Assembly (NCBI GenBank): GCA_963924565.1
Contig: OZ004609.1
Span: forward strand, 32,736,001-32,800,000
DNA: 64,000 nt
Reading direction: 5' to 3'
From: Ascidiella aspersa
Lineage: Eukaryota
Below the pieces are notes generated by a model. The model worked only from the letters and a program-made list of their open reading frames with translations, was not told where the DNA came from and made no database searches. This document shows, one piece after another, positions 42,601-45,600 of this stretch (positions are counted from its first letter, which is position 1; the number at the start of each line of letters is the position of its first letter). The translations under genes and the position numbers were made by a program.

Positions 42601-45600
42601 TCCTTTATTTAGCGAAAAATGTTACCTACTTCAATATGGGCTTTGATATTCCCACTGCGTCCAACCCATACTTTTCAGGGTCACATAAGATAAAACTAAA
42701 AAACGTTAACTAGGCGGCAACCTAATAATTCGCTATAACCACGGCCGTTTGAAATTACCAACAACCTGAATAACATTTGCTATACCTCGTTGTAGTTTAA
42801 AAAGCGCATTACTAAATATTCGCGTCATATTTTACTTGATAAATAAACACAAGTATACCTGCATGACGAATCCTATAATACCTTGATGATTTTACCAATT
42901 CCGTTTTACATTCGGCTTCACAACGCAAAATGACAAGGTTTTGACTTACTGAGAAAGTAAATGAAATGAAACGACATAAGAGTTTGTCAAGCAATACCGT
43001 AACAAGCCTAGTGTATTGTAGCGCTATACTTAATTTAAGTGCCTAATTGAAACCAAAATAGGCTCGGCGTAATGTAAGGCGTCTGTTGGCCATTGTAGCG
43101 TTATCCCAAGTTGCAACACCATTAGGACAAACAGTTTGTCGGCTGTTCGAAACTCAATAGCCTGGTGTTTTAGATTTACATAGCAACTTTAAAATTAAAG
43201 GAGCTGGTGGCATTCTTTGCCACATAAACCCGCGGGAAGGTGGATAACAAACAAACAAATATAAAGAAAACAAGCAATTAACAAATTACATTTAAAATAG
43301 GTTCTTCTGGCATATATTTCTTTAACCAACGTTTCGGCTTACTATACGGCAAGCCTTCGTCAGGGACTGACACACATGGCCAACATTTTTATCTCCTTTT
43401 TTCTTTGTGTCATTTTATTCTGCGTCCTGTTGGCTATGTGTGTCAGTCCCTGACGAAGGCTTGCCGTATAGTAAGCCGAAACGTTGATTGAAGAAATATA
43501 TGCCAGAAGAACCTATTTTAAATATACTGCGCCTGGTAGCAACAGCATATTTAAGCAATTAACAAAATCCGTTAAAATAGAAAACCATCAAACGGTGTGT
43601 CACCAAGCATGTAAACCTAAATTACACTGTACTAGCTAAACCAAATGGAACGGATCCAGTTTTTGCCCTTTCGCGAAACTGTATGGCCCATAGCCCTCAT
43701 AACTTGTTTGCAAAAATTTACCTTGACCAATATCACTATATAAAAATGTTAAAATCTTTCTTATGCCGCACCCTTCTAAATTAAACGATTTGCCTATTTA
43801 AATCAAAAACATATAAGAGCGGTTAATTGCATGCTTGCGCAGGAATTTGATCGAGAACAACATCTTTCTAAATATTTTTTGTAGGGGTAGAGAACTATAA
43901 ATACGCTTCACACAAAACATTCCATAAATTAATCCGATTAATTAGTTTCTACAGTCTAAAGAAAAACTGATTCTATTCGGAGTCAATTTTGTCATTAATT
44001 ACGAAGGGCAAAATAAAACATAACTTGGTACAGGTTTAGTTTATTATGGTTTTTAGTTTAATATGGCTAACAATAAACTATTAATCTTCTAAATTCTGTT
44101 TTGTTTTAGCGATTTGAGATTGGATAGTTATTACAACGTTTTCAAATGAGGTACTATTAGGATACAACAACAACTTCAAGCACAATATATGAACACAGTT
44201 ATTTGCAAAAAACACTTGTACTTCTGAAGTTAACTGGTAAACCTTACCTGAACTAGATAATGTTGTTTTGAAATGTTTAAAACAAAAGTAATACTATGCT
44301 CAAACAAGTGAAACACTTACAAATTGCTACTACGTTCAATGGTAGTTTTTCAGGTTGTTAGGTGATATTGCTTAAGCGTCGAGAAGTTTATGTACCTTCA
44401 ACTGTAATTTCGCAATAACAACCTATACTTGACATTTTAATCCGGTACCGATATTAAAAGGTACGTTTTTAAGTTTATAGGAAATAATTTGCTTTATCTA
44501 TAAGTTCAGTTAACAATAGTGGTTTATCTACATTTTTTAATAAATTCACTTTTCAAGGTAGAAATCGTTGCGTCAGATTGCAAACCAAAGATGAAATTGC
44601 TAAATTAATTTGCTATCCGTTCGGTACCAATACCGCCTTAGTATCGGGCGAACACAGATTTTACAACTTGGCAGCTGGCATCGGAACCGGTGTGATTTAT
44701 TGTCAAACATCCATAATTACTTGTTTTTTGACTTCACATTAAGCACAATTTGCCGAAAAACTTCCACCAATATAACTTTTAACGTTTTTCACGCCGACGA
44801 ATACTCACTGGTGTCGACGCCATCTGCGCTTGTTGTGACGTAATGCGTCGGTGGGCGGGGCCTCCCCCTCCCCCGTCCCCGATCCGGCGACGCTTGGAAC
44901 CGAAGTTGACGCTCGCGCCCCCCACAGTGGTCGGCTGGGCGGGGTTGGCGCCATCGCCAGGTGTCGCCCCAGCGCCAGGCTTGATTTCGGTGGCTGAAAT
45001 ATAGAAGAAAAAATTGTCAAGGTGCTTCTATAGCAGGGGTTCTTAAATTGGGGTCCATGGACCCCTTGGGGGTTCGTGAACTAGTTTTAGGGGGTCCATG
45101 AAGGTCTAATTGAAATATTCGTGTTTATTTAAGAAGTAATCAATTTATTAAAGAAATCAATTTAATTAAAAATAAAACGGTTTTGCACTGAATGTATTTA
45201 GACTCCATTTCACTTTCACAATTTTGGACCAAAATCAGCAAATTTATGAAGTCTATTTGTACTGTGACGTCAATTCATGACGTCAGTTTTTAAATTTACA
45301 GTGGTCCACGCGAGATGAAAGAAAATTTTAGGGGTTCGCGGTAAAAAAAAGTTTAAGAACCCCTGTTCTATAGTTTTAAAATAGGTTAAGATACTACGGG
45401 CATTCCGGCCGTTATTGTATGGCCTGTCGAATTGTAAATTCGTTTAAAAAGTAGCAGGGGTTGCCACACAATTTTATAAAAAAAAGTCGACATTCAAAGA
45501 TAAATTATTTATTCAATAAAATTTGATTTCGGTAGCTGGAATACATAAAATGAAAGATTTTCGTTGACTATGGTGTTTTATTGTTTGTTTTGGGAAAAGA

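Follow-up and report, generated by a model that had tools for sequence, protein, structure and literature searches.

A head-to-head insertion with a minimal hammerhead motif on each strand, in or near a dynein heavy chain gene of Ascidiella aspersa, and its probable origin from Penelope-like element machinery

Can a short inverted repeat that carries a hammerhead ribozyme motif on each strand be a working part of its host gene, or is it what an integration event leaves behind? The question is raised by a 267-bp insertion at positions 43286-43552 of a 64,000-nucleotide stretch of the 308.6-Mb Ascidiella aspersa assembly (C3:32736001-32800000; this whole stretch is the window, and coordinates without a prefix refer to it), located in or upstream of the 5′ part of a minus-strand gene that encodes a DNAH5-like axonemal dynein heavy chain. 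An initial annotation had proposed a self-silencing ribozyme cassette in dynein intron 3. We conclude that 43286-43552 very probably arose when a short non-autonomous retroelement, moved by the machinery of a Penelope-like element (PLE), inserted once and left two copies head to head. The argument draws on what we observe of its anatomy, its family structure, the covariation of its helices, and a PLE of the same architecture in the same genome.

The insertion is bounded by a perfect 14-bp target-site duplication, AAGCAATTAACAAA, present at 43272-43285 and identically at 43553-43566. Inside it, two inverted arms of 99 nt each (43287-43385 and 43428-43526) are 96% complementary, with mismatches at 4/99 positions, and are separated by a 42-nt spacer. 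The left fold-back arm is a 5′-truncated, tail-less copy of a repeat family that we call B-type, in inverted orientation (43286-43385, minus strand); over query positions 2-100 it matches, in reverse, the same arm of the family. The remainder is a 5′-truncated B-type copy in direct orientation (43383-43552, plus strand), and more than 16 single-arm copies elsewhere align exactly to query positions 98-267. Both copies are cut down to 100-170 nt, and the hairpin loop between the arms (43386-43427) is family sequence from upstream of the arm. The direct copy ends in a one-sided 3′ tail (43527-43552, plus strand) that contains CCTGGTAGCAACAG at 43532-43545 followed by a terminal CATATTT, and the left end of the insertion has no counterpart to it. 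No open reading frame (ORF) was found in the element, and hence none for a reverse transcriptase (RT) or a GIY-YIG endonuclease.

Each arm contains a minimal hammerhead motif, CTGACGAAGGCTTGCCGTATAGTAAGCCGAAACGTT, with CUGACGA-A, a 7-bp helix II, GAAA, the palindrome ACGU and U17. One copy lies on the plus strand at 43450-43485 (CTGACGAAGGCTTGCCGTATAGTAAGCCGAAAC at 43450-43482) and the other on the minus strand, that of the dynein gene, at 43328-43363 (CTGACGAAGGCTTGCCGTATAGTAAGCCGAAAC at 43331-43363); both are intact and match the family consensus. The pattern CTGANGA-N8-30-GAAAC occurs 4 times in the window against an expectation of 0.62, and a count of at least 4 was reached in 0/100 shuffles. 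In the minimum-free-energy fold the whole element forms one hairpin (−179.7 kcal/mol, z = −25.4) with the arms paired over their full length. The description in the initial annotation of ~95-bp inverted arms that each carry a hammerhead motif and of a perfect 14-bp duplication was therefore accurate, and the predicted end-to-end pairing agrees with its proposal that the hairpin would sequester the motif. A microRNA identity for the hairpin was considered and rejected: its Rfam matches at E ≤ 10 are of the generic long-hairpin kind and far below gathering scores (e.g. 74.8 bits versus 160).

The window holds a second fold-back of related build. At 461-631 we find an element of a second family, A-type, with its tail at the minus-strand 3′ end and an 11-bp target-site duplication, AGTT(C/T)TCACAG. 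The reverse complement of CCTGGTAGCAACAG is at 469-482, so the terminus is common to 461-631 and 43286-43552, as had been noted earlier for an element delimited at 461-642. The tail-less copy of this sister element retains its hammerhead at 565-600 on the plus strand, with a different stem (CTGACGAAGGCGGCTTGTATAGGTTGCCGAAAC at 565-597), and in the tail-proximal copy an internal deletion of ~32 nt has removed the hammerhead. An intact A-type fold-back was used for comparison (L063:9131-9365), and its tail-proximal copy has CpG-to-CpA changes in both boxes.

Both families are abundant. A genome-wide search for CTGACGAAGG-N8-30-CCGAAACGTT returned 233 + 229 exact matches, or 462 intact motifs, and the tail GCCTGGTAGCAACAG has 471 + 449 = 920 exact copies; the reversed controls gave 0 in both cases. 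The copies take two forms, single-arm and fold-back like 43286-43552. Single-arm copies have a common 3′ end, ...GCCTGGTAGCAACAGCATATTT or ...TATGCCTGGTAGCAACAGCATATTT, and their 5′ starts vary, at ~150, 170, 250, 315 and up to ~390-450 nt. Such a pattern, in which copies agree at the 3′ end and are truncated to differing extents at the 5′ end, is the hallmark of target-primed reverse transcription. Flanking target-site duplications range from 9 to 15 bp and are unrelated in sequence. In every fold-back examined the tail, 26-29 nt long, is found at a single end, and tail-less family arms stop at ...TTTTAAAT(AT), give or take a few bases, and thus lack the last 26-29 nt of a tailed end. Junction and spacer are particular to each independent fold-back: some have an inverted copy that exceeds the direct one in length, and in one the direct copy reaches 358 nt. 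Since the junctions differ, the hairpin must arise afresh with every insertion; a master copy that already contains the hairpin is not its source. Altogether, the A and B families have the character of short non-autonomous repeats, with a maximum length of ~450 bp.

Some family members are of interest in their own right. Three B-type fold-backs have an identical junction (L002, L004 and L006, at C9:5670329, C9:5785739 and C9:6393853), and L002 and L006 additionally have a common target-site duplication, ATAAGAACTTTACA; these are segmental-duplication copies on contig C9, not independent insertions. Long B-type copies (L021, L029 and L028) contain 25-nt tandem repeats (CGCTTTGTATTTTGAACGTTGTTTTAT) ~390-450 nt upstream of the tail, and the long form has an internal inverted repeat of 43-60 nt near its 5′ end. 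One stretch of the long form resembles a reverse-complemented tRNA A-box; however, ARAGORN finds no tRNA, and we rejected a tRNA-derived head of the kind found in short interspersed nuclear elements (SINEs).

The small size of the insertion (267 bp), its long inverted arms, its target-site duplication and the lack of any coding capacity found are what would be expected of a DNA-transposon foldback element or miniature inverted-repeat transposable element (MITE), whose terminal inverted repeats (TIRs) would contain a hammerhead-like string by chance. The family data make this extremely unlikely. The ends are asymmetric, with a tail on one side only, the target-site duplications vary in length over 9-15 bp, single-arm copies form a 5′-truncation series anchored at one 3′ end, and junctions are specific to each copy; together these features indicate reverse transcription, not cut-and-paste transposition. 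Additionally, a true MITE at 45034-45365 in the same window is quite unlike the insertion and has short TIRs of 14-19 bp. Assignment to a DNA-transposon TIR family, the outcome that would have overturned the initial annotation, is thus not what we found.

Whether the conserved string in the arms is a hammerhead can be judged against the minimal hammerheads of metazoan PLEs, in which a nucleotide remains unpaired between A9 and G10.1, the pair G10.1-C11.1 is conserved, helix II has 7-8 bp, helix I is short and ill defined, helix III is absent, and a palindrome at 15.2-16.2 lets two copies form an active dimer; many covarying consensus families occur per genome (Cervera & de la Pena 2014, PMC4209133). 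In both arms of 43286-43552 the catalytic boxes C3-U4-G5-A6-N7-G8-A9 and G12-A13-A14 are intact, with A15.1 and U16.1. Families differ at N7 (C, A or U) and at H17, where U and C occur but never G. A single unpaired nucleotide stands between A9 and G10.1 (CTGAnGA-A-G...) in the A-type, the B-type, the minor families and an RT-encoding PLE of this genome (L084, described below). At 15.2-16.2 the A, B and C families have the palindrome ACGU, and the L084 PLE has AGCU.

Helix II covaries. An alignment of 73 copies (A1) was picked by the core boxes, so that core conservation is unreadable from it, and in this alignment 96.7% of helix II cells are paired and both sides change in 4/7 pairs (for example 26:39 is U-A, G-U, A-U or G-C, and 28:37 is G-U or C-G). 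The pair 23:42, which is the G10.1-C11.1 pair closing helix II, is G-C in 61/61 sequences. The covariation score was reached by 0/500 shuffles, and sliding the 3′ partners by 1-3 columns reduced pairing to at most 49%. The covariation of stem II between the two loci of the window, on which the initial annotation had relied, is borne out: pairs 26:39, 27:38 and 28:37 are changed on both sides between 43286-43552 and 461-631 in a compensatory manner.

The comparison of core and flanks was made on copies selected by BLAST matches along the full 130-nt arm. Departures from the family consensus affect 3.3-3.7% of cells in the core versus 6-8% in the flanks, despite three CpGs in the core. The A and B consensuses agree at 26/26 positions of the core and closing pair, versus 3/9 upstream, 7/16 inside helix II and 21/41 in the downstream arm. 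All 11 core positions, G10.1-C11.1 and the ACGU or AGCU palindrome are kept across at least five families that diverge elsewhere, the L084 PLE included. The core is more conserved than its surroundings, so the hammerhead reading survives this comparison. As judged from its sequence, CUGACGA...GAAAC is a minimal type-I hammerhead motif of the PLE type, with every sequence feature listed in PMC4209133 and a cleavage site predicted after U17. The likeness extends from the extra nucleotide, G10.1-C11.1, the 7-bp helix II and the palindromic ACGU to the hundreds of copies per genome, the covarying families and the dual motifs on opposite strands, and the weak helix I may correspond to the short, ill-defined one of these motifs; in contrast, this genome has flanks and helix II sequences (GGCUUGC/GUAAGCC and GGCGGC/GUUGCC) of its own. 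Further minimal hammerhead families with other helix II sequences (e.g. GACGU/ACGUC) and H17 = C are present at L019:2465-2528 (−), L057:1956-2021 (+) and L077:354-432 (−), and one copy among them has a 15-nt insertion in helix II.

A genuine PLE in this genome has the layout of the A and B fold-backs. We searched the genome with the Pfam GIY-YIG hidden Markov model and found no A or B motif or tail within 1.5 kb of the 12 best matches; a wider look at one match revealed a different PLE with a minimal hammerhead of its own. This 5′-truncated element, encoding RT and GIY-YIG, lies on the minus strand of L084 (G000:C1:15308000-15316500). Its hammerhead, CTGATGAAGCACGGTTGTGCGAAAGCTT (CTGATGA-A-GCAC-GGTT-GTGC-GAAA-GCTT), is located 185 nt past the stop codon. 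The last 140 bp of the element are repeated in inverted orientation 5′ of the truncated ORF with 97.9% identity, a 28-nt tail is present at a single end, and the unit as a whole lies between copies of the target-site duplication ATACACTAA. Truncation points in eight further copies of this PLE range from residue 195 to residue 370, and 4/8 have a short inverted piece adjoining. Copies at at least 8 other loci share 94-98% protein identity over the aligned part, which suggests recent activity.

The same combination of features has been described for PLEs in other organisms. PLE insertions show strong 5′ truncation, often with an inverted 5′-truncated copy at the 5′ end and a tail of 30-40 bp on one side (Craig et al. 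2021, PMC8557442). A purified vertebrate PLE protein cuts and extends both DNA strands and starts reverse transcription at two adjacent internal sites, the interval between which is the tail (Frangieh et al. 2024, PMC11167929). Like canonical PLEs with an endonuclease (EN+), the A and B families show strong 5′ truncation, an inverted copy abutting a direct copy, a one-sided tail of 26-29 nt, two discrete 3′ end points, AT-rich targets, and a hammerhead ~40-70 nt from the 3′ end of the insertion, depending on whether the tail-less or the tailed end is taken; unlike them, 43286-43552 has no RT/GIY-YIG ORF. If both-strand priming and the two start sites known in vitro from another PLE apply here, the insertion would have formed as follows. 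PLE machinery would make staggered nicks in an AT-rich target, yielding the 14-bp target-site duplication, and would lay down two 5′-truncated complementary DNAs of one RNA 3′ region head to head. The direct copy (43383-43552) would begin at the distal start site and so carry the 26-29-nt tail, and the inverted copy (43286-43385) would begin at the proximal site and be tail-less. The 99-bp hairpin would then be a mechanical by-product of integration. Twin priming as in L1 was rejected, as it would give segments from different parts of the RNA, whereas here both arms derive from the same 3′ region.

Several findings weigh against this interpretation. The evidence for both-strand priming comes from in vitro work on a vertebrate PLE and not from this organism. 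Helix I is weak, with 69.7% of cells paired, and its form differs between the families: 2 bp, a bulge and 4 bp in the B-type, and another register in the A-type. Rfam hammerhead models gave no match, either in the window at gathering score or at both loci at E ≤ 10; a motif without helix III would be expected to escape them, yet this is still a failed test. The minimum-free-energy fold of a lone arm is a rod in which CUGACG pairs with CGUUGG and not the catalytic fold. The covariation comes from few independent lineages, namely A, B and about three minor families. Around the A- and B-type copies examined, no RT/endonuclease ORF was found up to a distance of 1.5 kb, and for the autonomous partner of the families there are candidates at the level of coordinates only: an RT match at C6:4397706-4398194(+) is followed 1.3 kb downstream by B-type 5′ sequence at C6:4399535(+), and another at C1:28716408-28717094(+) is followed 0.64 kb downstream by an A-type motif at C1:28717736(+). 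A large autonomous element beside 100%-identical A-type arms was considered and rejected, as the arms belong to small fold-backs of 240-270 bp. Separately, four RT matches at a spacing of 2.67 kb, each in an open frame of 698-816 aa, are present at G000:C9:23485701-23494499; going by coordinates only, another RT-encoding element, which may be a PLE, seems to be repeated there in tandem, head to tail.

The rod fold and the silence of Rfam would also suit a block CUGACGA...GAAACGUU that is a recognition hairpin for the RT/endonuclease protein of a PLE and resembles a hammerhead only in appearance. Published minimal hammerheads cleave poorly (PMC4209133), a vertebrate PLE hammerhead requires protein for cleavage and is dispensable for insertion in vitro (PMC11167929), and Naiad PLEs thrive without hammerheads (PMC8557442), all of which fit such a role. 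However, N7 varies freely among C, A and U without compensation by its rod partner, the L084 PLE is unable to form the rod, and H17 is never G. The joint retention of the 11 core positions, G10.1-C11.1 and the palindrome in families diverging elsewhere, and the B-type helix I pair 9:55, which is C-G in 19 sequences and U-A in 21, also speak for the hammerhead, and we regard a recognition hairpin as very unlikely.

If the motif is a hammerhead of this kind, can it act at 43286-43552? Minimal hammerheads have very low activity in vitro, and helix III needs a second copy on the same strand (PMC4209133). With its palindrome ACGU, the motif of 43286-43552 would likewise need such a partner in the same RNA strand to form helix III. 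The two motifs of the insertion are on opposite strands, so a transcript holds one sense copy, and neither a dimeric helix III nor a circle is expected. In a transcript crossing the locus the hairpin would form and bury the single sense hammerhead, which would have no dimer partner, and we infer that no cleavage takes place at 43286-43552. Self-cleavage of a monomer accordingly finds no footing in the published behaviour of minimal hammerheads.

In the host gene, the minus-strand exons at 38514-38726 and 37651-38016 match DNAH5 over residues 136-187 (E = 3.6e-7) and 198-267 (E = 3e-4), respectively, and an exon at 40122-40289 (−) aligns weakly to residues 50-85 (E = 0.38), including an LMFY(F/Y)Q motif. 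A candidate first coding exon at 40782-40943 (−) had no dynein match in a PDB sequence search. The insertion sits ~3 kb 5′ of the exon matching residues 50-85, and on the exon alignments it could lie in an early dynein intron or in the 5′ flank. Placement of the insertion in intron 3 is therefore not confirmed.

We examined ~6% of the reads of one RNA run. In these, RNA depth is zero on the flanks of the element and on the exon at 40.1 kb. Reads on the element come mostly from other copies, as 89% continue into unlike sequence; the bases at 43434, 43487 and 43491 are specific to the copy at 43286-43552. No pile-up of read ends was seen at the predicted cleavage site, where RNA depth is close to zero, and the few reads over the element show no A>G excess. 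In a second sample, ~1.7% divergent, a contig (X2 contig 13) crosses the junction of tail and flank, demonstrating that the insertion is present there, and no empty-site joint was found among those listed.

A functional cassette kept in the dynein gene, whose hairpin masks the hammerhead or feeds Dicer or ADAR to regulate the host transcript, could account for the extreme stability of the hairpin, for the two intact, consensus-matching motifs and for the presence of the insertion in both samples. We nevertheless give it little probability. The layout recurs at many unrelated loci with differing junctions, so it is the integration mechanism that produces it. The sister at 461-631 has already lost one hammerhead, and other family copies carry CpG-type mutations in the core. 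The 4/99 differences between the arms are as expected under neutral decay, and the RNA reads provide neither flank or exon signal, nor A>G excess, nor read ends at the cleavage site. Because the junctions differ from copy to copy, the sequence decays, and PLE integration as published (PMC8557442, PMC11167929) yields the arrangement, it is not apparently under selection, and the self-silencing cassette proposed for this locus gives way to an insertion by PLE machinery. The suggestion that it is a substrate for double-stranded RNA (dsRNA) processing, ADAR or small interfering RNA (siRNA) pathways would apply to any long intronic hairpin and gains no support from the reads examined here. Beyond its character as a long inverted repeat, in an intron or in the 5′ flank, the locus is in all likelihood inert.

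A broader form of this suggestion is that head-to-head PLE insertions are a genome-wide source of long, perfect intronic hairpins that neutralise the hammerhead and trigger siRNA or ADAR activity. If it were true, PLE integration would routinely seed host genes, this axonemal dynein included, with dsRNA regulatory or silencing modules, but we consider it unlikely.

Other short hammerhead-bearing repeats provide a useful comparison. Metazoan non-LTR (long terminal repeat) retrozymes and the Sm-alpha hammerhead SINEs of Schistosoma are thought to be non-autonomous derivatives of the pseudo-LTR (pLTR) of PLEs (bioRxiv 10.64898/2026.07.22.740005). They are, like the elements described here, short non-coding repeats with type-I hammerheads. 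However, retrozymes form head-to-tail arrays that give rise to circular RNA via dimeric hammerheads, whereas 43286-43552 is head to head with its motifs on opposite strands. Dual minimal hammerheads 100-700 bp apart on opposite strands have already been reported (PMC4209133). The fold-back layout with dual motifs is thus known for PLEs, and the A and B families are a further example at the family level; they add new helix II covariation for the minimal hammerhead and leave its current understanding unchanged. With their one-sided tails, two 3′ end points and copy-specific head-to-head junctions they form a clean natural dataset on PLE insertion. For annotation, such loci are best masked as PLE-derived repeats and not recorded as single ribozyme cassettes, MITEs or microRNA-like hairpins.

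The MITE-like repeat at 45034-45365 is itself worth recording. It is a high-copy repeat of ~330 bp, 1.5 kb away from the insertion, with DNA read depth ~100-fold over its flanks. Its TIRs (CAGGGGTTCTTAAA ... TTTAAGAACCCCTG) and a CTATAG-like flanking duplication give it the appearance of a true DNA-transposon MITE, and it is transcribed at a low level somewhere in the genome.

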